DNA from: Thalia democratica
Taxonomy: Eukaryota
NCBI GenBank assembly: GCA_965202585.1
Contig: OZ241828.1
Coordinates: 54,312,001-54,376,000 of the forward strand
Direction of reading: 5' to 3'
Length of the DNA stretch: 64,000 nucleotides
Numbering within the stretch: the first letter of the stretch is position 1; each line of letters opens with the position of its first letter. The notes beneath the pieces are model-generated. The model was not told where the DNA came from. It was given only the letters and a program-made list of their open reading frames with translations, and searched no databases. Both the position numbers and the translations under genes were made by a program. Positions 2,637-57,686 of this stretch are shown here, in pieces.

Positions 2637-2889
2637 TTCTATCTCTAATTATTGCACATTATTTTGTCTAAAAAATTACAGTATGTTTTAAGCTTCTACT
2701 AGGCTAAGAGCTTTAAAAGTCCTCATATTAAAAAAATATTAAATACATGTTGAATAAGTAACAAAATTAAAAAAAAATTATAAATTAAATAGTAATTATT
2801 ATTCTAGTAAAAGTACCCTTATTATATACTACATTTAAAAAAGACAATTACAAAACAGACACTGCATACCTTAATTTAGAACTATTATA

Positions 2890-3620
2890 TATAAAAATGG
2901 CTAAAGGATTTGAGGCTTAAATTAAATACTGATAAAACAAGGTACATGCTCTTTCAATTTGGTAAAACAAAAGTTTGAAAAATACAAAACAAGGTACTTT
3001 TTAATTCAAAATTTTTTGTACTAAATCTTTAATTCACTTCTGATAAGTCATGTAAAATACAGTTTGTTGTGTTGGAGTAGGACGAGTAAAAGCTAAAACT
3101 ACTGAGATTGATAAACTAGTAAATAAAGCATTAAGGTGCATTAATTTCTAAGGTTGGAATGAAAGTGTTAGCAGTCCAAAAATAGAAAAGAAAATATCAG
3201 ATGTTGAACATATATTTTAGTATGAGTTAGGAGTTTTTATGCACAAATCTAAAAGAGAAACTTTGCCAGTTAACTTTAAGCCATAACTTTACAAATGTTA
3301 ATAAAATTCATAATCATCTAACAAGATTTTCAAAAACAAACCTTTTTTTTCAAGAGTAAATAGTCTTTATGGCCTTAAGAAATTATCCTACCTATGTTGT
3401 AAACTATGGAAGAATTGCTTAAAAACTTAAAGGTTAAAGCTATTTTAAAGCACTTCATTGTGAAATTAGAGATAAATTACTTAAAAGACAATCAAAAAAA
3501 TATCAAGCTTAATCTTTACTTACCATTACTTAAACTTATGTCTTTGTATTGGTGTTTGTACTTTTTTTGGGCTGATTGCTGTTGGTCTCATAAACTGGGT
3601 GTATAATGGTTTTATTATTA
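2890..3620 (+). mobile_element. CR1/L2-clade LINE, decayed 3' fragment, copy A
   Basis: Broken frames read KWLKDLRLKLNTDKTRYMLF, SHVKYSLLCW, KLVNKALRCI, LPVNF, HNHLTRFS, LSYLCCKLWK. These are typical of the RT C-terminal/3' region of CR1-like elements. Borders approximate. Confidence 0.7.
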
Positions 3621-10342: not shown

Positions 10343-11721
10343 TTATGCTCGAAATTCGAAGCTTATCAAATACCTTGGTATGGTTACTTGGTAATCTGCA
10401 ACAAAGTGATCTTCTATACTTCTTCTATCAACTGAAGTATTTCTGTATCTTCTTCCCAAATGATCTCTTCTGTACTCTTGTTCAGCTTTTTCTATACGAT
10501 CTTTTCTGTACAGCTCTTCACTGATTTCCATGTTTAATTTGTTTACGTATTTTGTAAATTCAACGTCATGTGATTCATCTACGAGCCTTATAAATGAAAG
10601 ATTTTTCAATATATTACGGACACCTCGCATATTCAAGTTTTCGTGAAAAACAGTTTGCAACTTTTGCGACTCGAGAATTTCGTTGACAAACATGAGGTTT
10701 GTCTTTGTTTCAACGTTTCTTCCGCTGGAAAATAAAGAAGCCAAATCAGAACTTTCGGTTAGGTACACGCCTTCTCCGAAAAGACCATTAACAGAGTTTA
10801 TGTAACCAGTTTCTAAAATACCAGCTACACCTTTTTTACCAGTACCATGAAACAACATTAAGTTGCTGCTTTTTACATCGTCTGTTGCCTTTTTATTTTG
10901 CTCGATGACTTTGTATATTTGAGAAAGTTCTAAAGTGTCGTTGTAGTGTCCTGTCGTAGTTGTGTAAAAAAAATCTTTCACGAACTTAAACTCATCTGAA
11001 GTTTCTTTCAGCAGTTGGAGATTGTACTTCCAATTATCTTTATTAATATTTTCCAAATCTGAAAAAGAGTTAGCTTTTATTGTAAATAAATCGTAAAATA
11101 ATTTAAAACTACTTACTTATCAAAGCAGTCCATAAATTTGAACATAAGTTATATTATTTTGTTATCGTAATTGTTAAAAAATTATTTTATTTATTTTTAC
11201 TATTCTAAAAGAAAACAGTAGTTGCAAGTATTTGTTAGATAAAAGCATTCAGTATAAATAAAGATATATATGGAAGGGAACTGTTATTCAATAAATATCA
11301 TATTTATGTATATATACATATCAATATGATAGTTATTGAACAATATATTGATATACATATAAATTTAAATTTGTTGGTAATTTTTAAATTTGTTAAACTA
11401 AAACAAAATTAAAAGAATATTTTCTAGGGGGTTTTTTAAAGTAAGCCCATATTATGTTTTGAATTTTGATATACTGTCTTGTCCTAGACAAGACGTTAAA
11501 ACATAACCGTAGTGTGACACCAGATAACCGAAAGGTTCTTCGTGCACCAGGGTTTATAGGGTAAATAACTAGTATAGGGAAACTGTTTTGAAATTTATAC
11601 CCTGTAGGCAATTATAAAAATAAGTTTTGAAAATCCTTCTTTTAATCTATTTGATTGATCACAAACAGTTTTATTAAAACCACGCGATAAAGCTAACCTT
11701 ACTTGATGACCAAAATGTCAT
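10343..11721 (-). CDS. Stand-alone PARP-fold (ARTD-like) ADP-ribosyltransferase, 244 aa, copy A (intact)
   Basis: Exon 1 11721-11703 (MTFWSS, donor gtaagg, phase 1) plus exon 2 11058-10343 (acceptor tttcag) gives 735 nt in frame. Motifs: LFHGT, GLFGEGVYL, LASLF, DHFVADYQVTIPRYLI. Confidence 0.88.
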
Positions 11722-26000: not shown

Positions 26001-28940
26001 CGTCTGAACGATTGCTGTTTCTACAACCAAGGTATTATTAAAAACATGAGTATTTTAAAATACAACTTTACTTACTGTTAGGCGAACGAAGCATCAAAAT
26101 ATTCTGCCGTTCAACTCTCTGTGTCGAGTTAATACTAATAAATTTTCGTTAAAGTCTAAATGAATAAAAAGTTACCAAGTCATAAAAAAACAGAAGTTTA
26201 TTTAATTCTTCATTATAAATACTTAAATGAGACTTAAAAACTATGCTAACTTAAAAAGCTTTAAAATATCTGCAGTAAGAAACATTAAAATGTATATAAT
26301 ACAAATAACTTGTTAATGTAATAGTTAAAACGCATAAAGATAACAAAGTGAAAACATTATAGTACAAAATTATTTATACAAATATAAAAGTACTTAAAAA
26401 TAAAAGAAAATTAAATATACTAACACGTTTTTGAATAGCAAATATAAGTTGACAAGAAATGTTGAGGTCATTAAAAATTCTTTTCAAAGTTCTGGGATTT
26501 TCATTCAAGTATTTTGACAACGATTCATCTTGAATTAGAAATTTCCTTGCAAATTTTTTATTTAGTTTAATTATAGCCAATGTTGTTTTCATAGCAATAT
26601 AAGCTGTTAATTTAAGCAAGCTAAATCACGAGATTTTGTTATTGTAGTTAGAAAAAACAAATTCAAGTGCGACACTGATTACCTATTTACACTTCCAATT
26701 CAAAGTTATTAGTAAGCATATTCTATAATTTTAACACATCAAAACAAATTTCAAATTAAAGTAACAGTTAAATCTTAAGAAATCTTAACAAATTTAAAAT
26801 GTTTTTTTTTAGTTAAAACCACACTAAATTTCTTAACTTTTAGGATAAAATAATTGGGTGTTAAATTCTTTTAAAATACTATCTAAAAATATTGTACGAT
26901 TAAATTATAAAATTTTAATTTTACAGCTGTATAAAAAAAAGTTTTTTTTTTCAAACTTAATTAAATATATCAAAAGCTTCTATTTTTTTCAATTTAGAAC
27001 CTTAAACATAAAAGTATATATTAACTGCAAAAAATGCAAACATTTCAGATTCAAGACTTACTTTTGTTTATTTATGTGCTTAAAAATATTTTACTTAAGA
27101 AATAAATTTTCGTTTATGCTAATACTGCTTGGAATCATAAAAACACCTAATATAACAACAAAATATTTTGAGCAGAAAACTTAACAGAAACTTTATCCTG
27201 GCTTATTTTGAAACGTTGAATGAAATTTTTAAATTATGTTTTGTTGTTAGTAAAAATTTAATAATAATTAACTAAAAACAGTACAGTAAAATATAAAATT
27301 AACTAATAAAACCAGAATACAAGCCTTAAAATTTTGGATTGAATTCAAATGGTTGAAACAATACAGTAATGATCATATAAAAACCTGCATTCAAAGAAGA
27401 AACGTTTAGAATTTAGAAATCGATTGCAATTTGCAGTGTCAACTTCACAATGGTTATCTCCATTACCGTCCTTTGAATTTCTATAAAAAATTGATTATTA
27501 AATTTATTTAATCAATAATTTTAAAATAGCTAGCTTTCAAAGTTAGTTACTTTTAGAAGATAAGCTCTTATGTTGGTAACCTTTTTCATAATAGAAAATA
27601 GCAAAAATTTTGTTTTATGTAGCAAATAGTTCAAGGTTACTTACCAAAATTAATGACATAATTAAATAGTTTTGATAGATAAGTAAAGGAATACGTAAAC
27701 TTAAAAAAAAAAACTTGGTTATGCAAATTATTTATGTTAATGCTTTAGAAAGTTTAAAAGTTTAACAAATATGTGAACATAATGTTGGAGTGTTTATTGT
27801 TTAATAAAAAAACACTACTAAACAATTGTAATCAACTAAGTAAAGTCTGTTTTAAAAAACTGTCATGACTTATTTACAGTAGCAATCATAAAAAAGTATA
27901 AGCCAAATTCTCAGGGGTAAATACATATATCCAAAATAAAAATAAGTTAGACAAGATAAATTGTATTTATTTAATAAAACTAATTATGAATTTAAAAAAA
28001 GTACTTAACTTACATTTTGCCATCTCCACAATTTTTAACTTCTTTATTATGACTTGTAGTCGTTATACTATTTTCTGCTAAAAATATTTGAAATTAACAT
28101 AATGTTAATTTAGATAGTAAATGAATCTGTTCAGCGTTTCAATAGTTTTAAAACTTGTTATAAAAGTTATAGAGACACTCAACAATTTAAATCAATCTAC
28201 CTCTAGTCAAACTTTTAGAAGTAACTTGCATAGTAACGTCAAAATGAGATTCATGAAGGTCATTCAAAAGTCCCGAAAGAAAAATTTGCTTCTCTTTGTT
28301 TGCTAACTGAAATTGATAATCTGATTAAAACTTTTATCTAGCACTTTCATTATTGTCAAACATAAAAAAATATCTATAGTTACCACTAGAACATAAAAAA
28401 ATCATATATTGTTTGAATACTTTAAAATTTGATAAGTTTATCATTGATTTTAATCTTTTATTAGATAAAACATTTCGAAGCTATTCAAAGTATCTATAAA
28501 AAAAAAACATCAGCTAAAAGATTTAGTTAAACTACTTTAGGCAGGTAAAAGGGAACGTTTATTATTTTGTCCAAATACTTTTCTTTCACCTGTCTCTCCT
28601 GCAAAAGAGGTTGTTTGTCTGACGCGGGGCAAACTTGAAACGCCAACTCGGCGAGTTTGGGGTCAACCGCGATGATGCTGACAAATGGCGAGTGCTGATT
28701 GGACAATAAAATGTGGACCGATTCGAGCAGGGATTTAATTTTTGGCATGGGGCACCGGTCGAGATCGTCGATTGATATGACGACTTTGTAGTCGACGCCT
28801 TCGATCGTTCGCACCACTTGCAGCAGATGCTCTAATATTTCCACCTGTGAATGTTTCACTCAAGTTTAGTGGCTGTGACTAAATTCAGGGTTCGTGCGCA
28901 AATTTTTTTTCATTGAGCCTGACTGAGAACAATTTAGCCA

Positions 28941-28979
<39 letters not shown>

Positions 28980-31900
28980 TAATAAAACACTATGTTTTCA
29001 AATACAATTGTTTCACTGCTCTGTTTAACAGAACAGCTCTTCAGTTTGTCCATTATGATAATTATACTAATGTGATAATGTTTACTATATATCAATAAAT
29101 AAAAAATATTATGTCATAATTTAACCTCAGATTTTACTTTGTACATGAAGCCAAGCTGTTTGGCGAAACTCTCAGTTGAGTTGTCCAGGGTTCTGTTGAA
29201 ACGACGCACCTGGGACTGAAGCGTTGCCATGGCAAGTTTGAAAACAACCAATAAGGAGGCTGATACGGGTGGTAACCATGACAACAGTTGAACATGTACT
29301 GGCACTTCACGACCGTTCTGGTGATAATACATTATATTGAGATTTTTATATTTAAAAACATACTTTTATTTTTAAAGTTGTACAACAAAAGTATCAAGTG
29401 TTTAGCTTAAAGTTTGTCAAAAAACGTTGTTGAAAACTTAAAACTACAAATCAATGATCAATTTAATAATCATCAGACACACAACAATATAAAATTAAAT
29501 TAATTTTGGGAAGCCGAATTTAATTCAGCAAAAGAATTTTTATGAATAATACTTTCAAATTATCAAAAAAATAGTTTTTAATTTTAACTTATTTCATACT
29601 ATCATAAAGGTGCATAAAAATTCAACACTTATTTTAAAAAATCATCTTTTTTTTTCAAAATCTAATAACACATACAATAAATATACTTATTAGAAAATAA
29701 AGTTTTATATATGTATTTTTCTTGTTTATTTTCAAAACTATTTGAAAAAATGTATTGCTTTCTCATTTTTTCTAATATATATGCAATCAAAAATCTTTTA
29801 AACTTTCATAAAGCAAACTAGTCAGATATGAAACAATTTTTTGTACCACATCTAGCAATAAAATCTAAAAATTTGTGTTTATTTATAATTTATTATGACA
29901 AAACGAAGTATTTCTAGAAACAGGGTGGCCAATTGTTTTTAATAAATTTTTCCAAGATTTTTTAAGTACACGTTTTTGGGTCTAATTTTAGTTTTAAATT
30001 AAGTATAAGGTAAAAACTGTGTCAAATAGTATAACAACATTGAAAATATACTGTAAGCTACTTTTAATGTGTATTTTAATAAAAAAAGCTTTGATAATGA
30101 CAATTTTTTTTATCTATTATACTATAGACTTTTTGCGTCAAATCAAAGTTTTACTATGAGCATATAAAAGTTGTTTAAAACTCCAAGTTTTTTGTTGATT
30201 ATTAATCTAAATTCCAATTTTCTCTGTTTTTTTTCAAAATTTCTTAAATTTATGGTTTTTCGAGGATTCAATGTTTTTTAGCCACCCTTTAGAAATAAAT
30301 AGTTCGTTATATATATTTAGTTTTTAGTCTATAAATGACTTACTATGATTAAAAATAATTTTAAATTGTACTACCTCTGGGTTAGTAGCTTTGAAAAGCA
30401 ATTATCAACAATTATTTTATCAAAATTTATTTACATTAGAAGCTTGAAATTTGGTTGGAAAGTATAAGTTCACAGGATTTTAAAATATTTCAATACTAAG
30501 TTTAAGACTAAAATTTTTAAATAAAACTAAAACACTTAAACTTTTATATCAAACTAAACATCAGTTTGCACAGCAAAGTGAAATAAAAAATTACAATACA
30601 AAATTTGAAAACCAACATTGATTACCTCAAAAGGCCTTTAAGAAGCCACTTAAGTTTGTTAGATTTAGCAAACAAAGTATTCACAAGTATAAACTCATTA
30701 ATTGGAAAATTTTAAACTAGCAATGTAATAAAAACTAGCAAGGTAAAACAGTCTTAAGAATTCATCAATAAAAACAAGAACTTAAAAAACAAATTAAAAT
30801 ATCAAGTTATATAATATGAAAATATAAAGGTAAACCTTGAAGAGATTTTAGCGAAAATCGAAAGCAATGTAAACGTAATGTGTTTTATATAATTGTTATT
30901 AATTGTTATTTGTTTCCTTGTTTTTTTGACTAAATAACTTGATAATTCACATTTATGATTATCAATGTAATTAGCATTGTTAAACTAAGTGAAACATTAT
31001 GAATTTTTAGAGAGATTTGTACAAAGTTCCATAACTTCCATGAATCTAGATTTTATAACCACCACCTTGCATATCGTACTGCCTTTTTAGTTAAGACTTT
31101 TCTCCAAAATTTCCGAAAAATTTTCTGATTAAGTAGCAAATATGTAAAAACATATTGCTTAATTTTTAAACATAAATGATGCTGTTACAACTAACTCTTA
31201 TGACATCCAGATTGAGATGAGCGACCAAGGAGTTGACGGCGAACGGGAAGCAGAGAAGTGAAAATGCGAATACAAAGCATGCCAACACTAGAGGGATTCC
31301 ACAACAGATTCGTTTCGGATGACTGACCATGTGTGCGAACAAGGACTTGGTGACCAGCTGGTACTCACTAAAATAAAATGTCAACTGTTTTATTTGTGTC
31401 AGAAACTAATTTATTGACTTTTTCAGGGTTGCTACTCATTTTTTCCAAATTTTTTCCAGGTTTTTCAAATTTCATCCAGGTTTTTAAAAGTACACATTTT
31501 TGGGTCTATTTTTAGTTAAAAATAAAGTTAAAGATAAGAAACTGTGTTAAATAGTATAAAAACATTGAAAAAATACTGTAAAGCTACTTCATTAATGTTT
31601 TTTAATAAAAAAAAATTTGATGATGACAAATTTTTTTAATTATATGATAAATTTTTTGAGTCAAATCGAATTTTTACAAATAAAAATGGGAAAGTTGTTA
31701 AAATTCCAGGTTTTTTTCAAAATTTCTCAAATTCTAGGTTTTTAGTTTAAATACTTCCAGGTAAAGTGGCACTCTGTTTTAAAAAAACATATCAAGACAA
31801 ACAAAAAACTGGTAAGTTATTAGCTTTTTTTAACTACTAATTTAATTACTAATAAATTTGATCGTAAATTTTCAAATTTTATAAACATAACCGTACAAAT

Positions 31901-34900
31901 AAAGATAGAGTGCTAGTTTTTTTTTTGTATAGAAATGCATAAAATAATACTGCATTTATTTGCTACTGCTGTGTAATGATTATGGTTGTAAAAACTAAAA
32001 TTTATTAAAAATATTTTTGGATAATTGGTTATTGTTTGCTGACTGTGATACTCTATTATAACAAAAAATTATTTCAAAATTACAAGAAAAAGCATATTTG
32101 AATAAGTTGTACCTACAGAGATAAAAATGTTACTAAAAAATCTGAAATTTAAAAAGTATATAAAAAGAAAAATGTTAAAACAGTTTATAGCCAAAACTAT
32201 TTTAGGAATAATACTGTACAAATACTTCATTTAAACTGTTTTATTAATCGCGGCTAACTAAAAAAATACTGTTACATAATAAAAATGTAAAATTACTATT
32301 TTTAAAACTTTAAAATAAAAATATTCTTACACATAAAAATTAGAACTTAAGTGTTAAAAATTAAGGCCACAGGAGGGTAAAGATGGATTTTTTTTACAAG
32401 TTGGTCTAGTGTTTTTTTTGTTAAGCGCTAGTTGCTTTTTACTACTTTCTTAAAGTATAAATAACTTTTGAGATATGGCGAAACAAAGCTAGATAGTTCA
32501 AAAGATTCTTAGTGTAATTAGCAAAGTAAAATGATAGAAAAGAGTTTTTCATTAAGTATATATTTTTTCTTACAGTTTTTTCAGCCTAGTATCTTAAATA
32601 ACTTAAACAATTTTATTAGTTAGTTAAATAGTTTTATCTTAAGTAATGCTGTTAAAATGATATTAGTCAAAAAATACTTAATTTTATTATTTTGAAGATG
32701 CTACAGCATGACTTTTTATAATCATGCAACAAACTTTTCCTAAAAATTGAGGTTTTAGCATAAAGAGCCAAGAATGATGTAGATATTTAGTGAACTTATA
32801 AAAACTAAGAAAAATGATCATTGAATTTTTCTTTGAAGGCTTGTATCAACAACTTTTTACAAAAGTTAAATGAAAAGTTTATGTTTTATATAAAGTATCC
32901 TATAGTTAATAGTTTTTAAATAAGCAAAAAACGCAGATAAATGTAAAAAATATGACTGACTTCCGTATGGCCTTAATCTATAAAATAATGATAAAATATT
33001 AATTATTATTTATAGTTCTACGAAATTCACAAAAATCATTTACACTTAAAAAAAATTAGCTATTCTTTACTTTTTTTTAATTTACAATCTTTAAACTTAT
33101 TTTGAACAAAGTAAACAAAAACTACCAAACTATTCATGAATTTAATTACAAGATTTTTTTAAATAATTAGTTGAAGTTTATTACCAAAAAAAGAATTATC
33201 AAAGTACGTAACAAACCATAAAAACAACAATATAAAAAAGCTGGATAAAATTTTGACAAAACTTAAGAAAAACATTAAGAATTTACTTGTTTTCATTTGA
33301 AGCAACTGATTGAGGAAGTTCTGTAGAAGTCGTATCTTCCTGGGTGACTTGATTCGCGCTGCTTCGTTCAAGCTTGCTCATTCGAACCATGCAGTTGCCC
33401 CTCTTTTTACTCGCACACTCAACCCTCACACCGGAAAGCTTCATTTCATCGAGGAAATTTTTGGCCTCATCCGCTTTGCTGAAAGTAATTTTACAAGAAC
33501 CGGGAGCAGAAAAGGCGCAAAAATCCACTTTTCCGTAACTTCTCGCCACTTTGGCGACATGCTCAACGTCCAAGTTTTTGTTTGCCGAATGCAAAATGAT
33601 CGATTTGTTTTTAGAACCTCTGTTTTAATATAATTTTGAACAAATTGAAGTATTGAACAATCGTATTAGACTTACATAACAACTTAAAATAAAAAATTAT
33701 GTTTTCTTTCTTAAGTTGATCTGTAACAAAGTTAAAAATCAAATGGACAAGTGTAGACACAACGTAGAATCGATTTATTTCAGCAGAACAAATATAACAA
33801 CATTGATGCTTTGATAATTTTCAATTAAATGAAAAGATTTATAAAAAAACTTCTTAAAACCAGCTTAAACTTTTTCGATTTAGGTTTATACTTCTCAACT
33901 GTAAGTGTTCTGAACAGCCTAGTTGCAATCACACCGATCTTTTGTTCAACTTCATCCATTATGCCAGTGATGATGGCTGCCCATAAAATATCGCTTCCTG
34001 AGTACTGCCACGCCGAAAACTTCACAAATATAAATTTTCTCAGCGCTGGTCGCCTAAAAATATTGACTATTATTGAAAACAAGTAAAAAATATAGGTTAT
34101 AATTAAAAATAAGCTCCAAATTTTTTTTTAGATTAACTTTATAGTAACAAAAAGAGTTGAAATAGACATGATATAACAAATTTTGTAAGCATTATTTATT
34201 TATATCTACAAGGAAAAACCAGTCAAATTGTAAATTAGAAACTTAAACAAAAAAAAAAAACTTTTAGTAAATTTTTGTTTCATTACATGATATACTAGAT
34301 TCCGAAGTAACTTAAGAAGGACATTGAATAACATTAAAATAAAGTAAATTGTAAAGCAGTGGCTTTGGAAGATATTCTCTTATAGCAGGGTAGACACTGG
34401 TTTTTGAGAATTTTTTTCCAGGTTTTAAAAAGTACACGATTTTGGGTCTATGTTTAGTTTAAATTTAAGTTTAAGGTAAAAATTGTGCTAAATAGTATAC
34501 CAACATTAAATGGATACTATAAAGTTACTTTAAATGTGTTTTTCAACAAAAATAAAAAATAGTTTTTGATGAAGACCATTTTTTCTATCTTTATGATAAA
34601 CGTTTTGTGTCAAATTGTATTTTATTACTTTACATTTAAAAATTTTTTTTAACTCCAGGCTTTTAAGTGGTTTTTGTTCAAAATTGCATAATTTTCCAGT
34701 CTTTTTTTTAAATTATTTTTTAATTTCCAGGCTTTTTTAGCCTAAATTGTCAAATTCAAAGCTTTTCTAGGATTCCAGGTTTGATGGCCACCCTCTTTAA
34801 CATAAATTACTCTAAAAAAATAAGCATCAATCTTTAATTATAACTACTATAGTAAACTGTATTTAAAGTAAGTTTAATTAAAAGTGTTTAATTAACTAAA

Positions 34901-37900: not shown

Positions 37901-40900
37901 TTATACTTTAAAAATATCTAAAACTGAGCATTTAAAAATTAATAAAACATTGAAAAAATTTTTCTTGCATATTCTAGGTCTCTAACTAAAAAAAAGATCA
38001 TAAAAACATGGGTGAAGGTTTACAGCCTAGACTTTTGTATGACGTGAGACAAGCTCAAGACACACCTATTCGATCATCAGACCACAAGCCTTCGGTAGAC
38101 TGAGACCCGAGTTTTGTTCCTATTAGTGTTTTTAAGTATTTATTTTTAGTGAAATATTGAGTTAATTATAAGTTATTGAATATTGAGTTCCAATAAGAAC
38201 GAAACCTGGGTCTCAGTTTTACTCAAAATGTATAAAAGTGATAGATTTTTAGCACAATTCAATAACAATTAACAATTCAATAAAATAATAATTTGATTTA
38301 TTATTTTATAATATCTATGAAAATTAACATTAAAAAATTTACAGTTCATATGTCTGTATTAGAAACTCTATTTAACAAAATATAATTTTCTAAGTTAATT
38401 AAGTCTTTAACATTCTATAAAACTGAATTATAACCATACTTAATGCTTTCATATAAAATTCAACAAGATTTTTTATTAAAAAAATTCTTTTGATCCCTTT
38501 CTATTGAAGACTACATGAAAATTTAAACTCTTTAAATCAAGAAATAAATTTTTTTAACAGTATTGTTAAATTAAGAAAATTAACACAAACTAGAAGCTCA
38601 AATTATAAAAAAACAACTATTCATTATAAAAGATAATTCATAATTGCTAAAAATAGCCATACTTTATTTAGTTTTAAAATTTATCTAGGACATATCTCAA
38701 GGGAATATAAAAAATTTTAAAATGTATTAGAGCACATTCTGATTAAAAAAAAAACTGAAGATCTTTATTAAAGTAAAAAATTGTTATAATACAAAGTTCT
38801 TTAAAATAAAATAACAGTAAAATTAATGAGTGTCAAGTCTGCTGTATACATGCTTGAGCAAACTACTAAAACTTTTTAAATAAATTGACACACCAAGACA
38901 TTGAAAATTTTTGAGCTAAAGCACAAATTTAATCTTACAATATAATAGTATAACATAATTAAAATCAACACAAAAACTATACAACAATTTTAAGATATGA
39001 ATTCTTTAATCTTTTATTATAGAGATTTCAAATAACCCAGAACCTTAAAACATATCGAAACTAACTTAATCAAGTGCTTGACTTACAATGTACAATTTTT
39101 GATATATTATGTACAAAAAATAATCATGCTCTATACCTTTAAATAATAAATGACCCTCAAGTTTTTATGTGTGAGTTAAAATGTTTACATGTATTAATTA
39201 AATTAGAGTTACCTCCTTAAAGTACGAAAATTTAGTGAAAGAATAAATTTTTTAACAATTTATATTTTTAAAAGTTATAAAGTATTGTTTCGAAAATTCA
39301 CAAAAATTTTAGATGTTAATAACATACATCGTTTTTTTTTAATTTTTACTACTTTAAGTAGGGGTAGAGAGTACTTGGGTGATGTTTGCTAGACACATGA
39401 GGAGTCTTGATTTAGATGTGTTTTGGTCTAATTAAGAAGAATTAAAAAAAAAATTTTTTTTAATTCCTAAAAAAAAAAAACTGCACCCCAAAAAACTGAT
39501 CTGGACCCCAAAAATCACATAATTTTTGATTTTTCGACTTAAATAGTAATAAAGTCACTCATACATGTCCTAGACTTATATATTATATCTTAAATGAAAG
39601 CTAATAGTTATAGGTACCTTTAATGACATTTCAACTGCTTTGATATATTATGACGTCATAATTACACAAAATATGCAAATTTTGACTGTAAAATGGAATT
39701 TTTTCTATTATAAAAAGCAAATTCTTCTGCTGGTTTTATTTTTAGTTTCTATGATTTTGAATGACAAATTCTGAAGTCAATCAACCAGAAAGATATTACT
39801 AAGTTATTTCAATTGTTTGTTGATAAAGATATAAAAAACACTCTAAACCACTTTTAGATATTATGTTTACTGAGAGCACCTGAGTAAAAGCAAAAGAATT
39901 AGACATATATTATAAGAACTACATGTAAATTTATTAAAATTAGTGTTATTTTATTTTTTCATTATAAAGCAGGGTTGCCACTTTACCTGAATCCTGGAAA
40001 AACCTGGAATTTGATAAATTTTGAAAAAAAAACTGGTAAAACCTGGAATTTTTAAGAATTTTAACATGTTCAGTAGTATATTAAAGTGTTAAACCCAACT
40101 TCTGAGATATGTTGTAAAATTCTTAAGAAGATGTGTCTCCATGCCGCTCAAGTTTTTGATCGCCAAACAGGTAGAGAATATGGTTTTGGAAAGTTTTGTT
40201 TGTCAAATCCACCACGTGCTACTGAGCTCAACCTATTAAGTAATGAAGAACTGGTTGGACTCCCAACAAACAACTTGGAATCTGAAAGACACCTCGCTGG
40301 ATTTGGAAGGCGAGCAGCAGTGGCAAAGTTTAGGAACCAACGATTCACAGCAAAAGGGATAAGAAATGACTGTACATTACTTATATCTGATTCTTTTCAA
40401 ACTAAACATGAAAAAAAAATTAATAAAGTTGTTTAATTTCTGAATGAGATGGAGCAAAGGTGGGTAGCAGATCAAAAAAATTTAAAGCTCAAACACATAA
40501 AGGAAAAAATTGAAAAAGGGAAAAAAAGGGATCAATATGTGCAGAAACGTCTCAAATTGTGTAAAAGTTGGGGTGGGCCTGTAGTGAGCGTGGAAGAGCT
40601 GCGTTCTATTTTAAAATCTCATCCTCATCGAAATGAAGTTATTGTTCGTAATGAGTTAATTTACTTTAGAGAGTCTCACAAATCTGAAGTGTTATACAAT
40701 CCAGAACTTTTTTAAGTTAATGGTAATACTCACAAAGAAAGACTTCTAAACTTATGTGCTTTTGTTGCAGAAGATGATGAGTACTCTCTATGTTCTTTGC
40801 CAACAAACACTGATGCATTATTAATTGTAGGGGGTTCTTCCCCCAATATACAGAAAGAAAAAAATGAAGATATTATGAAAGGGAATTTTTATGTCACATT

Positions 40901-43364
40901 AATTAGTGAAGGGTCATCAGACACATGGTATATTGCTATGTGTGAAGGTAAAAATGATGATGGGACTTTTAAGATGGACCACCTCATGAGAGTTCAAGAC
41001 AGAAGTAATTCGAAGTGGAAACACCCACCTAAACGTGATTTGCTAAACTTGCATTTAGATTCTATTCTTGATTGTAAAGTTGGAGGGGAATAGGATGTTT
41101 CTAATGAAAGATCTATTACTTTTTCACTGAGAAACCATGTCCAAATAGATTTAATAGTAGAACAGATGTCTTTTACATAAAGTTAAAAAGTAGTTTTTAT
41201 GTATTTTTATGAGTATTATGTACATATAGTCAGTTAGATTTTTATCAATCATTTGACAGTTATTTTATACTAGTATTTTTAAAAGTATCAGTCATTTTGC
41301 AGTAATCTTAAGTGTTAATACTAAATGATACAGTGCAATGTTCGTTTTATTATGTAATGTTCTCTATTTCTTTATTATACTAGTCTCTATTTATTTTGCA
41401 ATCATTAACTTAATGTTTAATGCCATACAACATTATGTTGCCTATAATAAACTATAACTTTTTTTAAATTTCTTTATGTTGTTGTAACGCAAATTGAACA
41501 TTCTTAGGTTATTTTTAAATACTTATAGCTAAATGAATTATGACATCTAATATCCCATTAATATACATACAACATCACCTAAATTTTAAAGGTAAGTAAG
41601 TATATCTACAAAGTTTTATTTTAAAATATTTTGTTTTAATTAGATTAGACAACTAGTGCTTCTTAATTTTTCAAAACGCACCATTTTACAGATAAAATTT
41701 ACATATTTTGTGTGATTATGACGTCATAATATTCCAAAAGCAGTTGAAATGTCATTAAGTGTATGCCTATAATTATTAGCTTTAATTTAAGATATAAAAT
41801 ATAAGTCTAGGACGTGTATGAGTGACTTTATTACTATTTAAGTCAAAAAATCAAAAATTATGTGATTTTTTGGGTCCAGATCAGTTTTTTGGGGTGCAGT
41901 TTTTTTTTTAGGAATTTTTTTTAATTTTTTTTTAAATTCTTCTTAATGATACCAAAACACATCTAAATCAAGACTCCTCATATAGATTTTACAACATGAC
42001 CAAAAAAATGTGCTGTACTACCTACCCCTACTTTAAGTCTTTATTATGCTTTTGTAAAAAAATACCTTGTGTTTGATGCACTATAAATGACTTTCCACTT
42101 CCAAAGGGTGCAAAAATTCCAATTGAAAATGGGGACTCAGCTCAGTAAATAATGTTGGCAAGAGTTTTTGAATATACTGAGAATCCAAGATGATCAATTT
42201 CTCCAACATAGTCACCAACTAATATGTTTTCTGTTTGATATTAGTGAAATGTATTAAAAACAATTAATACATAAAATATTTAACAATTAAAAAAAAGCTT
42301 TTATTTCTTTAATATTTGATTATCTTAAACTTAAATTTTTAAATACTACAGTGCTTAAACACTTATCCAGACAGTTTCATTTGAAAAGAAAATTTAAAAC
42401 ATTTTCAATAGTAAGCACAAACATTTTTGTATGATACAAATATTTAAGCTATCATGATGAGTAAAAAATTTCAAGGGATTTTGTAAATTCTGCAGTTTAG
42501 TTTATCATGACGTAACAATACTACTGAAGCCTACATTCAGACTTTGTTTACAAATAGTTTAGTTATCAAAAACCTTTGTAAGTAAAGTAGTTCAGTTAAA
42601 AAAAATTAAACAATACTTTTTAAAATATGACTTACAGTTTTTTATTTGAACTTTTAAAGTTTTTTGATAATTGAATAAATTCTAAGTTTTTTAAGAAAAC
42701 TTATGTATAACAGTTCTTTTATGCTTGATTTTTATTTCAAACTTTATCATAGAAGTTGTTAATTCAAACACTTTTGTTTAAGATATGAGATGGATAAAAT
42801 TTTTTTTGTTTTATTTATAAGTTATATAAGTTTGACACACTTAACATACCAAGTTTTAGAAATGGACAATACATCAATAAAAGAAAACAAGTTGCACTAA
42901 CCATTGAAAATAAACAAGAAGTTTGTAAAATGGTAAAAAAAACAATGTGCTAAAGTCTTTTATAACGGAGTAGTTTAGCATATTCAGGTCACATTTTTTA
43001 TGACATTTTGAAAAGTTAAGAAAAGTTTAAAAAGTTCAAAGCAAAAAAGAGGAGCTAAACTAAAATGCATTGCTGAACATACAGTAGTTATATTATTTAA
43101 TGAAAAAATTGAATTTTTGTTCTTTTCTGGACGTGTTTAGAGAAAAATCTTGCCAATCATGTCCTGATAAGTGAATAAGAACTGTACAACTACAATGATT
43201 GTACACAGTTAAGCTTATTTGTTTTAAAAGTTGAATAAAGTCTGAACTTTAACAGAAAACATTCAATTTTGTATATAAAACTGATGTTAATAACCAAATT
43301 AAATAATGTATAAATTACCTTTAGGTGAAATTACTCTTTTTATCAACTTTTTATCACTTGCCAT
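23030..43364 (-). CDS. Multi-pass membrane KAP-family P-loop NTPase (NKPD1/Kidins220-like) with RRM-like insertion, ~882 codons, copy B; one premature TGA at codon 45
   Basis: Hand-built phase-consistent GT-AG model. Exons: 43364-43319, 42230-42066, 35750-35246, 34053-33892 (or -33871), 33619-33287, 31367-31196, 29317-29126, 28844-28536, 28306-28201, 28077-28014, 27480-27385, 26545-26425, 26118-26076, 23764-23599, 23198-23030 (2649 nt). Motifs in order: APFGSGKS (Walker A), two TM segments, FVKFSAWQYSGSD, RRM-like exon, two TM segments, QLGFMYKVKSEV, VVISIDDLDRC (Walker B), YLDKIINVPFYLP, NPRTLKRIFN, QWP, FISFL...INFD. The last exon end and a few donors are uncertain. Confidence 0.85.
24767..25437. 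mobile_element. hAT-type MITE in an NTPase intron
   Basis: TIRs caggcacgtagct / agctacgtccctg (12/13 match); 8-bp flanks gtttttac / gcttttac (7/8 match). Confidence 0.75.
28945..28976. repeat. (TA)n microsatellite, intronic
   Basis: Uninterrupted TA run. Confidence 0.95.
29921..30289 (+). mobile_element. CAGGGTTGCC-family MITE
   Basis: cagggtggcc ... gccaccctt, with a perfect 6-bp duplication tagaaa (29915-29920, 30290-30295). Confidence 0.8.
31424..31776 (+). mobile_element. CAGGGTTGCC-family MITE
   Basis: cagggttgctac ... gtggcactctg. Internal ccaggtttttaaaagtacacatttttgggtctatttt is shared with the other copies. Confidence 0.8.
34386..34795 (+). mobile_element. CAGGGTTGCC-family MITE
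   Basis: cagggtagacac ... gatggccaccctc; same internal core. Confidence 0.8.
38098..38218. mobile_element. Small hairpin MITE, copy B
   Basis: Duplicate of 103-223. Confidence 0.6.
39970..40065 (-). mobile_element. One end of a CAGGGTTGCC-family MITE nested in the hAT element
   Basis: cagggttgccactttacctgaatcctggaaaaacctggaatttg is the reverse complement of the right end of the other copies. Confidence 0.7.
40086..41180 (+). pseudogene. C-terminal transposase remnant (365 codons, one frame, three in-frame stops)
   Basis: ORFs 40086-40436, 40449-40715 and 40797-41093 share one frame, separated by single stops. PTNNLESERHL resembles the hAT C-terminal (dimerisation) motif; WGGP and a C-terminal W-x-HP-x3-D beta-rich domain follow. 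Confidence 0.7.
42349..43184 (+). mobile_element. pogo/Tigger-like element, copy B
   Basis: Duplicate of 1619-2456 with the same TIRs and TA flanks. Confidence 0.75.
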
Positions 43365-51012: not shown

Positions 51013-52344
51013 TTATGCTCGAAATTCGAAGCTTATCAAATACCTTGGTATGGTGACTTGGCAATCTGCAACAAAGTGATCTGTTATGCTTTTCCGATCA
51101 ACCGCAAAATTTCTGTATCTTCTTCCCAAAAGATCTCTTCTGTACTCTTGTTCAGCTTTTTCGAAACGATCTTTCCTGTACTGCAATTCACTGATTTCCA
51201 CGTTTAATTTGTTTACGTATTTTGTAAATTCAACATCATGTGATTCATTTACGAGCCTTTTAAATGAAAGATTTTTCAATATATTACGGACACCTCTCAT
51301 AATCAAGTTTTCGTGAAAAACAGTTTGCAACTTTTGCGACTCGAGAATTTCGTTGACAAACATGAGGTTTGTCTTTGTTTCAACGTTTCTTCTGCGGGAA
51401 AATAAAGAAGCCAAATCAGAACTTTCGGTTAGGTACACGCCTTCTCCGAAAAGACCATTAACAGAGTTTATGTAACCAGTTTCTAAAATACCAGCTACAC
51501 CTTTTTCACAAGTACCATGAAACAACATTAAGTTGCTGCTTTTTACATCGTCTGTTGCCTTTTTGTTTTGCTCGATGACTTTGTATATTTGAGAAAGTTC
51601 TAAAGTGTCGTTGTAGTGTCCTGTCGTAGTTGTGTAAAAAAAATCTTTCACGAACTTAAACTCATCTGAAGTTTCTTTCAGCATTTGGAGATTGTACTTC
51701 TAACTATCTTTGTTTATATTTTCCAAATCTGAATAAGAGTTAGCTTTTATTGTATATAAATCGAAAAAAAAATAAAACTACTTACTTATCAAAGCAGTCC
51801 ATAAACTTAAACATAAGTCATATTATTTTGTTATCAAAATTATTAAAAAAATGTTTTATTTTTTTACTATTTTAAACGAAAACAGTAGTTGTAAGTATTT
51901 GTTAGATAAAAGCCTTCGGTATAATTAAAGATAAACATTGAAGGGAACTGTTATTCAATAACTATCATATTGATATATATATATAAGTTTAAATTTGTTG
52001 GTAATTTATAAATTTGTTAAACTACAACAAAATTAAAAGAACATTTTCTAGGTGGTTTTTAAAGTAAGCCCATATTATGTTTTGAATTTTGATATACTGT
52101 CTTGTCCTAGACAAGACGTTAAAACATAACCGTAGTGTGACACCAGATAACCGAAAGGTTCTTCGTGCACCAGGGTTTTTAGGGTAAATGACTAGTAAGG
52201 GGCAATTGTTTTGAAATTTATACCTTGTAGGCAATTATAAAAATAAGTTTTGAAAACCCTTGTTCAAATCTATTTGATTGATCACAAACAGTTTTATTAA
52301 AACCACGCGATAAAGCAAACCTTACTTGATGACCAAAATGTCAT
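51013..52344 (-). pseudogene. PARP-fold ART, copy B: TAG at codon 16, new in-frame ATG at codon 22 (223-aa ORF 51013-51684); pseudogene or re-initiated allele
   Basis: Exon 1 52344-52326 and acceptor 51728 are conserved. TGG->TAG at 51700-51702; CTG->ATG at 51684. The rest is open and differs from A at 17 of 222 residues (hand count). Confidence 0.75.
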
Positions 52345-56834: not shown

Positions 56835-57686
56835 TCAAAATTCATCATGCTTCTTTTTACCGTTCACATCTTTCAGAAAATCAATCTCCATGCCGTTGAC
56901 CGGGTCTATCAAAGTGAGAATGGCAGGTTGGCGCCAGCTAGTGATCCAATATGGAACTTCTGAAATATCAAAAGGAATAGCCAATCCGAAGTTGTAGCAC
57001 TTTGAAGCATCAAGCCTTTCACAGAGTTCAAACTTCATTTCAATAGTCACATTTGAGAGCTGGTCGTAATACATCCTAGAGATGGAAAATTTGTCGAATA
57101 CGTCTAATTTCTTTTTACACCAATGCTGAAGTGGTAAGTTATAATATGCTATATACTTACATAAGTCTCCTTGAAAGTTAGTAACAATAGCTTGGTTTCT
57201 TAATTTTCCAAAAACTTGCAATTTAAACAATTCTGAAGAGCTTATTTCTGCGAAGTATTCAACTAGAAGCCCTGGACACTTGTCAAATATTTGAAATTTT
57301 TCATCAGTCGTGTAACAGGATTCACCTATACAGGATATTTTGTTATCTATATCGTAAAGGCTGAAGACAAGAAATATGAATTTTGGGTCTTCAGTAACTT
57401 TCTTCGGAATGATTAGCTTTTCATCAATTTGGTCGGATGTCAATCGGAATTCAGCTTTAATCTGGAGGCCATCAGTAAAAAAAAGAATGTGGATTTTGTC
57501 GTAGTTATCTAACGACTGCTTAGCTCCGGAAGCGTTCTCAATCAACTTCCTTATGACGTCACATTCTCTGCTGTTTTCTTCTTTTTGAGGACCTTCACGG
57601 GTCGGAGTTGCCGACATTACTGTGGATGATTGCAACAGCAGAAGAAACATGAAGGTGACCAAAATCACATTATATGAAAACATCAT
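56835..57686 (-). CDS. Unknown Cys-rich secretory-pathway protein with HDEF, 283 aa, copy B (intact)
   Basis: Open ORF; signal peptide, eight Cys shared with copy A, identical DVNGKKKHDEF end; acceptor 16 nt upstream of ATG. Confidence 0.85.
   Translation of the reverse strand: MMFSYNVILVTFMFLLLLQSSTVMSATPTREGPQKEENSRECDVIRKLIENASGAKQSLDNYDKIHILFFTDGLQIKAEFRLTSDQIDEKLIIPKKVTEDPKFIFLVFSLYDIDNKISCIGESCYTTDEKFQIFDKCPGLLVEYFAEISSSELFKLQVFGKLRNQAIVTNFQGDLCKYIAYYNLPLQHWCKKKLDVFDKFSISRMYYDQLSNVTIEMKFELCERLDASKCYNFGLAIPFDISEVPYWITSWRQPAILTLIDPVNGMEIDFLKDVNGKKKHDEF

Follow-up and report, generated by a model that had tools for sequence, protein, structure and literature searches.

The DNA analysed here, hereafter called the window, is a stretch of 64,000 nucleotides of the forward strand of contig OZ241828.1 (C4:54312001-54376000) in the 802-Mb genome of Thalia democratica (assembly GCA_965202585.1; G000). 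It is AT-rich, with a G+C content of ~25%. The minus strand of the window carries a gene that is predicted to encode a membrane NTPase of the KAP family. Within this gene lies an exon, referred to below as the insert exon, which encodes a predicted folded module in front of the third transmembrane (TM) segment. An earlier note, made from the letters of the window, had described this exon as an RNA-recognition motif (RRM)-like domain brought into a KAP NTPase by exon shuffling. The gene was rebuilt from splice consensus, reading frame and comparison with its paralogs (Table 1).

Kidins220, NKPD1 and many proteins of bacteria belong to the KAP NTPases, P-loop enzymes whose catalytic domain is interrupted by membrane hairpins. 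The Walker A (GxxGxGK[ST]) and Walker B (hhhhD[DE]) motifs are both present in the window gene, as FAPFGSGKSF at ~42.1 kb and VVISIDDLDRC at ~28.77 kb. The Pfam family KAP_NTPase (PF07693) matches the Walker B exon with 55.4 bits and the exon encoding the FSAWQYSGSD strand (the FSAW exon) with 21.6 bits, the cut-off being 20; a paralogous Walker A exon scores 28.4 bits against the same family. When the Walker A, TM1-2, FSAW, insert, TM3, TM4 and Walker B exons are joined, they form a single open frame except for one TGA codon in the Walker A exon. Kyte-Doolittle analysis of this spliced model gives hydrophobic segments at residues 80-110, 141-179, 414-449 and 465-488, two of which lie between Walker A and the FSAW strand and two between the FSAW strand and Walker B, as in KAP proteins. 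The window gene is assigned on these grounds to the KAP-family P-loop NTPases with four putative TM segments inside the NTPase domain, in agreement with the earlier note.

Table 1. Exons and other features of the KAP NTPase gene, with positions in the window
Feature	Position	Strand	Remarks
Insert exon	33287..33619	(-)	333 nt; phase-2 intron on either side; 110 whole codons and two split codons
Folded part of the insert, residues 1-82	33373..33618	(-)	Predicted from AlphaFold2 models and fold searches
Ser/Thr-rich tether, ~28 residues, predicted to be disordered	33287..33372	(-)	pLDDT <50 from residue 69 or 86 on
Codon TGT (Cys42), strand 3	33493..33495	(-)	TGG (Trp) in all other copies and in the related organism (alignments)
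Walker A exon (...FAPFGSGKSF...)	42066..42232	(-)	Paralogous exon has a Pfam match
Exon with TM1, outside loop, TM2 and juxtamembrane segment	35246..35750	(-)	Joins the Walker A exon in phase 1, junction G/GT; hydropathy
FSAW exon, KAP core strand and helix	33871..34053	(-)	Acceptor clear; donor 33870 or 33891, both phase 2; Pfam KAP_NTPase
TM3 exon	31196..31367	(-)	Begins with 1 base (phase 2), ends in phase 0
TM4 exon	29126..29317	(-)	Spliced model
Walker B exon (...VVISIDDLDRC...)	28536..28844	(-)	Pfam KAP_NTPase, 55.4 bits
Additional 3′ exons	near 26.4-26.6 kb and 23.6-23.8 kb	(-)	
In-frame TGA, 14 codons before the P-loop	42142..42144	(-)	The remaining seven array copies found, four from C4 and three from C28, have AGA
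Insertion of ~2.6 kb in intron 1	39397..41981	(.)	Inverted repeats of ~300 bp at its bounds; break in collinearity with the neighbouring copy (1298/1308)

The translation of the insert exon opens with GSKNKSIILHSANKNLDVEHVAKVARSYGKVDFCAFSAPGSCKITFSKADEAKNFLDEMKLSGVRVECASKKRGNCMVRMSKLERSS (minus strand, from 33618), and between 33618 and 33289 it contains SIILHS, VEHVAKVARSYG, KVDFCAF, SCKITF, ADEAKNFLDEM and VRVECA, followed by a Ser/Thr-rich tail. The peptides and the linker listed in the earlier note are thus reproduced. The exon lies between the acceptor ...aaaacag/A at 33621-33620 and the donor AA/gtaaat at 33286-33285 (the slash marks the junction), and its AG and GT sites are kept in all nine genomic copies and on a metagenome contig of a related organism (L011). 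A split codon contributes one base at its start and another two bases at its end, which places phase-2 introns on both flanks. This phase assignment is drawn from genomic DNA, namely from the conserved AG/GT sites and from donors that keep the frame. In the upstream FSAW exon (from 34053) there are no more than two GT donors with 2 bases left over, GAG AA/gtataa (exon end 33892) and AAA AA/gtttaa (exon end 33871), and the frame is kept with either. The length and the phases claimed for the insert exon hold, as does its placement after the FSAWQYSGSD strand: in the spliced model it stands between the helix ending in ...IGVIATRLFRTL and the third hydrophobic segment. Removal of the 333 nt leaves the spliced model in frame, so that skipping of the exon, suggested by the earlier note, is arithmetically possible. 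The symmetry of the exon is not special here, because the adjoining FSAW exon is also of the 2-2 type, which gives three successive phase-2 introns. The borders of the insert exon fall a few residues from the ends of the predicted domain. Its G+C content is 0.44 against ~0.25 around it, and the other exons of the gene are similar G+C islands. An open reading frame (ORF) of 107 codons runs antisense over the exon (33310-33633, plus strand); it is taken as a by-product of the G+C-rich coding exon and not as a gene.

Nine further matches to the insert, with 88-94% protein identity, were found in the genome. Contig C4 holds some of them in a tandem array of five genes spaced 40-64 kb apart; others are on contig C28, a mirror of three of the five C4 array genes, and on the fragment C1556. 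Every copy of the C4 array contains the insert exon. Eight of the ten matches have an open frame; the two exceptions, C1556 and C28:126 kb, comprise one frameshifted and one truncated copy. Among the recent copies introns and exons are equally similar. The window spans ~1.6 units of the five-unit array, and within it the segments 57-20931 and 38051-58721 form a tandem segmental duplication of ~38-40 kb with blocks that are 78-96% identical. Searches of protein sets returned few relatives. When 1.84 billion representative proteins were searched by phmmer with the translated exon, P0001, an ORF fragment of a related organism, was the sole real match; two other matches were rejected as repeat-protein artefacts. 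Homologous-protein searches of a 5.8-billion-protein set, within its length limits, returned only the European Nucleotide Archive (ENA) metagenome fragments P0001, P0004 and P0005.

A comparison over a longer time is provided by contig L011, a 784-nt metagenome contig of a related marine organism with 3x coverage. Its copy of the insert exon is 84% identical to that of the window and differs by a sole indel of 6 nt, which is in frame; the introns are 77-79% identical and contain many indels. At a synonymous divergence (dS) of ~0.5, the ratio of non-synonymous to synonymous substitution rates (dN/dS) is 0.2. The FSAW exon copy on the same contig (L011:1-110) reads TTC TGA ATA, with a TGA where the window has AGA, and represents a pseudogene copy or an error. 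Because both splice sites are kept, the indel is in frame, dN/dS is 0.2 and the G+C content is that of an exon, the insert exon is taken to be a long-standing coding exon that has probably been under purifying selection relative to the related organism. It is older than the amplification of the array and than the split from this organism. Three other C4 genes have uninterrupted frames in each of the six exons assayed, which implies that the architecture is real for the family, even if the window copy is dead.

The window copy itself is damaged. Its Walker A exon reads ...ANIIY, then the TGA, then AESPFSIGIFAPFGSGKS; of the eight array copies found, five of them on C4 and three on C28, it alone has this stop, and the seven others have Arg at this position. 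The replacement of Trp42 by Cys in strand 3 of the module is also private to the window copy. Because of the stop in the P-loop exon and the loss of this Trp, the window copy is probably a pseudogene or a null allele. In its intron 1 it carries a private insertion, probably a DNA transposon, whose inverted repeats (39397-39696 and 41981-41681) are 90.8% identical; plus-strand ORFs at 40086-41093 within it have no Pfam match. In the next array gene, whose insert exon occupies C4:54306723-54307049, the FSAW exon is missing entirely. Unrelated sequence, which includes a poly-C run, takes the place of ~418 nt there (C4:54307200-54307580, ~4.4-4.8 kb left of the window start; L014), and a like state is seen on C28 near 126 kb. 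In this neighbour gene, splicing of the TM1-2 exon straight to the insert exon would keep the frame.

These lesions raise the question of whether the insert exon is non-functional today, a remnant, decaying or silent, within a pseudogene array. The stop in the window copy, the missing FSAW exon of the next copy, the frameshifted or truncated C1556 and C28:126 kb copies and the stop in the FSAW exon of L011 would all fit such a state, as would the dN/dS of ~1 or above among the copies within the genome, a value from few substitutions that says nothing either way. The intact state of three array copies in all six assayed exons, the long-term dN/dS of 0.2 with its in-frame indel and, as a weak hint, the presence of 8-10% of the sampled words of the FSAW-insert stretch in marine metatranscriptome contigs make a non-functional exon very improbable in our view.

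The beta-alpha-beta-beta-alpha-beta pattern that the earlier note had read from the exon was recovered by AlphaFold2 in two models. For the window sequence (mean predicted local distance difference test, pLDDT, 54.6), a strand-helix-strand-strand-helix-strand order followed by a disordered tail is predicted. The trimmed domain taken from a sister copy with Trp42 in place of the window's Cys gave a pLDDT of 74.2 and a predicted template modelling score (pTM) of 0.64, with strands at residues 6-11, 29-32, 41-46, 64-72 and 75-82 and helices at 18-28 and 49-61. Both models show the topology of an RRM at moderate confidence, and this topology is common to many non-RRM folds. The tether behind the domain is the most variable stretch of the insert in the alignment of copies. 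In Foldseek searches with the second model about two thirds of the top 50 matches are RRMs, with no E-value below 0.012; the best structural matches include the RRMs of NELF-E, calcipressin, SYNCRIP, TIA-1, PTBP1 and RBMY. RRMs are the largest class among the weak fold matches of both models, which are shared with other ferredoxin-like folds, and fold searches of the AFDB clusters and the ESM Atlas lead to generic alpha/beta domains.

At the level of sequence the affiliation is fainter. The Pfam family RRM_3 matches the insert with an E-value of 0.008 and 16.7 bits against a cut-off of 22.9, the alignment being in register with the predicted elements. Language-model neighbours of the insert are RRM-clan families with modest scores. 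A profile-profile alignment (hhalign) of the insert with an RRM_1 profile from the same genome scores 14.7, a value that is also attained by 4 of 150 column shuffles and is therefore marginal; the register is kept between helix 1 and helix 2. PDB sequence searches with the insert profile and with half of the insert of a distant paralog, C1-b, described below, gave chance-level matches only. The RNP2 and RNP1 consensus motifs with their exposed aromatics are absent: strand 1 reads S-I-I-L-H-S and strand 3 G-S-C/W-K-I-T-F, and the base-stacking positions are occupied by I8, S41 and K43. The earlier note was therefore right to call these aromatics degenerate. Its proposal of an RRM-like domain stands as regards the topology; the fold matches are weak, no Pfam RRM match came up to cut-off, and the profile match is marginal. 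The insert is most likely a ferredoxin-like module affiliated with a degenerate RRM that has lost the RNP aromatics, and canonical RNA binding by it appears unlikely from these residues.

Two distant KAP paralogs, C1-a and C1-b, are arranged in tandem at C1:43.169-43.192 Mb (L027:8751-9425; L029:2430-2702 and 2869-3309). Their core exons are 41-55% identical to those of the window gene. In C1-a the region from FxAW to TM3 is encoded by one exon and contains only a low-complexity linker without an insert; a C1-a-type gene without the insert is also found in a related organism (P0004). C1-b (C1:43.183-43.192 Mb; L029) is collinear with C1-a save for ~85 extra residues in the loop before TM3, inserted after ...CRLFRT... 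and before the ...HxxxPKxxC...TM3 segment. Like the window gene, C1-b encodes a KAP NTPase, with intact GSGKS and DDLDR motifs, and has its insert in the same loop; the two genes also share the phase-2 intron between the TM1-2 and FxAW parts. In contrast to the window gene, the C1-b insert contains an RNP2-like (...TLFVNL...) and an RNP1-like (...RGWYVVEF...) motif and matches the RRM_1 profile significantly (hhalign score 22.6, P 5e-4; 0 of 150 shuffles reach it, with none above 17.7). It is split by an internal phase-0 intron and is contiguous with the flanking coding sequence, with no flanking introns. Both the insert and its intron are kept in the ortholog on a Tara Oceans contig (L031), with a dN/dS of 0.07. 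Judged by its motifs and profile score, the C1-b insert is a statistically supported RRM in the loop where the window gene has its own insert.

We propose that the insert exon is truly coding, that it belongs to a group of four-TM KAP NTPases specific to the lineage and amplified in tandem, and that it encodes a ferredoxin-like module of ~82 residues, most likely a degenerate RRM, the window copy being probably dead or null. Taken as a whole, this reading has in our judgement about an even chance of being correct. Besides the dN/dS among the in-genome copies mentioned above, several observations weigh against it. The fold models were built from a multiple sequence alignment of only seven near-identical rows and may thus rest on little. 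No family of the Pfam RRM clan (e.g. PF00076, PF08777) matches the insert at cut-off, and RRM_3 matches only two of the seven members. The unrelated Pfam family Lig_C matches all seven, below threshold (E 7e-4 to 5e-3), which counts as one observation because the seven members are near-identical. A local RRM_1 hidden Markov model from 20 RRMs of the Thalia democratica genome scores the window and C1-b inserts no better than shuffled sequences. Finally, no similarity between the window and C1-b inserts was detectable by Smith-Waterman alignment with shuffles or by hhalign, and the positions of their introns differ.

Such observations would be expected if the module were a ferredoxin-like domain of independent, non-RRM or de novo origin, the loop tolerating insertions that were acquired separately in the C4 array and in C1-b. 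The lack of a significant sequence match to any RRM family, the dissimilarity of the two inserts, the other intron layout in C1-b together with the missing insert in C1-a, and the sole close-relative fragment found as a homolog among the 1.84 billion representative proteins all speak for this explanation. It has to contend with the prevalence of RRMs among the weak matches of both models, with RRM_3 and RRM_1-profile alignments that are in register with the predicted elements and with the shuffle test, marginal as it is (4/150). The entry of two unrelated domains of the same topology into one loop is also less parsimonious. We regard a non-RRM origin as possible but less probable than a degenerate RRM. 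Two histories may be considered. An ancestral KAP-RRM fusion may have been kept in C1-b, lost in C1-a and have diverged fast in the C4 array, with turnover of introns; alternatively, insertions into a permissive loop may have occurred independently.

The earlier note had gone further and attributed the architecture to exon shuffling. The exon is symmetric, with phase 2 on both sides, as a shuffled exon would be. Single-sequence and profile searches of the 802-Mb genome found no donor or other gene with a related module, the copies of the KAP array being the only matches, and no donor module was found among the 1.84 billion representative proteins, in the 5.8-billion-protein set (within length limits) or in the metagenome contigs of the Joint Genome Institute (JGI). 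With no related module elsewhere in the genome or the protein libraries and with a neighbouring exon that is also 2-2, exon shuffling is possible but unsupported. A more specific version, in which an RRM exon was recently shuffled from another gene into a phase-2 intron to give an RNA-binding membrane NTPase with a skippable cassette exon, would explain the symmetric 333-nt exon whose borders lie near the domain ends. It would also fit the absence of both flanking introns from the C1 paralogs, C1-a having a single exon from FxAW to TM3. The lack of a donor gene in the genome, the public protein sets and the JGI metagenomes, the age of the exon, which predates the array amplification and the split from the related organism, the replacement of the RNA-contacting RNP1/RNP2 aromatics (I8, S41, K43) and the 2-2 phase of the FSAW exon make this version quite improbable.

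The position of the insert suggests where the proposed degenerate RRM would act. Because it lies between core strand 2 with its helix and the TM3-TM4 hairpin, and because all strands of the P-loop core must share one side of the membrane, the module would be placed on the side of the NTPase core. It would be tethered there by the ~28 disordered residues and ~18 more before TM3. According to the published topology of Kidins220, the NTPase side is cytosolic, and by analogy the module would be cytosolic as well. It may serve as a ligand-contacting or regulatory appendage that binds a protein, or RNA in a non-canonical way, and relays a cytosolic signal to the NTPase in the membrane.

The order of Walker A, TM1-TM2 hairpin, core strand and helix, TM3-TM4 hairpin and Walker B (hhhhDDLD) is the same in the window gene as in Kidins220/ARMS and NKPD1. 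The window gene differs from them in having a folded module of ~82 residues and a tether between the core helix and TM3, where Kidins220 is not known to have more than a short basic linker. Unlike Kidins220, no ankyrin repeats are seen upstream in the window, and unlike Kidins220 and NKPD1 the gene belongs to a five-copy tandem array adjoining PARP-like genes. Counterparts of the module itself are RRMs without RNP aromatics: the xRRM of La/LARP7 (Pfam RRM_3), UHMs and the RRMs of calcipressin and NELF-E, which share its predicted topology with an extra C-terminal strand. These domains bind proteins or bind RNA non-canonically. Bacterial transmembrane P-loop NTPases (Tmn and KAP NTPases in defence islands) are linked to defence in two reports (PMC13001434; bioRxiv 10.1101/2025.10.07.681051). 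The window gene would share with them a membrane-inserted P-loop NTPase in a variable, amplified locus, and any relationship to them would be putative. It differs from them in being eukaryotic and intron-rich.

To our knowledge, the regulation of KAP NTPases is largely unknown. A literature search found no paper joining KAP NTPase terms with RRM, and the protein sets searched, in which full-length annotated KAP proteins of other animals could not be surveyed, contained no such protein. If the proposed architecture is true, a folded accessory module placed in a cytosolic loop beside the core would lend itself naturally to feeding input to the NTPase. The supported RRM that a paralog in this genome carries in the corresponding loop adds weight to this view. 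Should the module prove to be no more than a generic ferredoxin-like insert that evolves fast in dying copies, it would be a modest curiosity of one lineage. The earlier note had missed the Walker A stop of the window copy, the gene array as a whole and the better RRM of C1-b. The stronger lead is the pattern at the level of the family, especially C1-b; support for an RRM in the window exon is weak, and the copy that holds it is probably dead.

The surroundings of the gene provide a further context. Each repeat unit contains one single-exon ORF for a PARP-like ADP-ribosyltransferase (window 10346-11056 and 51013-51684, minus strand), of which 10346-11056 matches Pfam PARP with an E-value of 2e-10. 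ORFs of ~280 residues at 18635-19477 and 56835-57686 (minus strand) have an N-terminal hydrophobic signal and a C-terminal HDEF, without a Pfam match, and the two copies differ notably in their middle part. An array with PARP-like genes, a signal-peptide/HDEF protein and birth-and-death decay resembles immune-type loci, by analogy only. One could imagine that KAP NTPases with an RRM in the cytosolic loop, recognisable in C1-b and diverged in C4, sense cytosolic RNA, for example viral RNA, and were co-amplified with PARP-like genes and a variable secreted or endoplasmic reticulum (ER) protein as an animal counterpart of the bacterial defence NTPases; we consider this scenario unlikely. Between the first PARP-like ORF and the first HDEF ORF, at 12850-15306, the window contains a G+C-richer minisatellite with many direct and inverted copies of its unit, which is open in several frames and would give repetitive GHFCT/VTFAR peptides.

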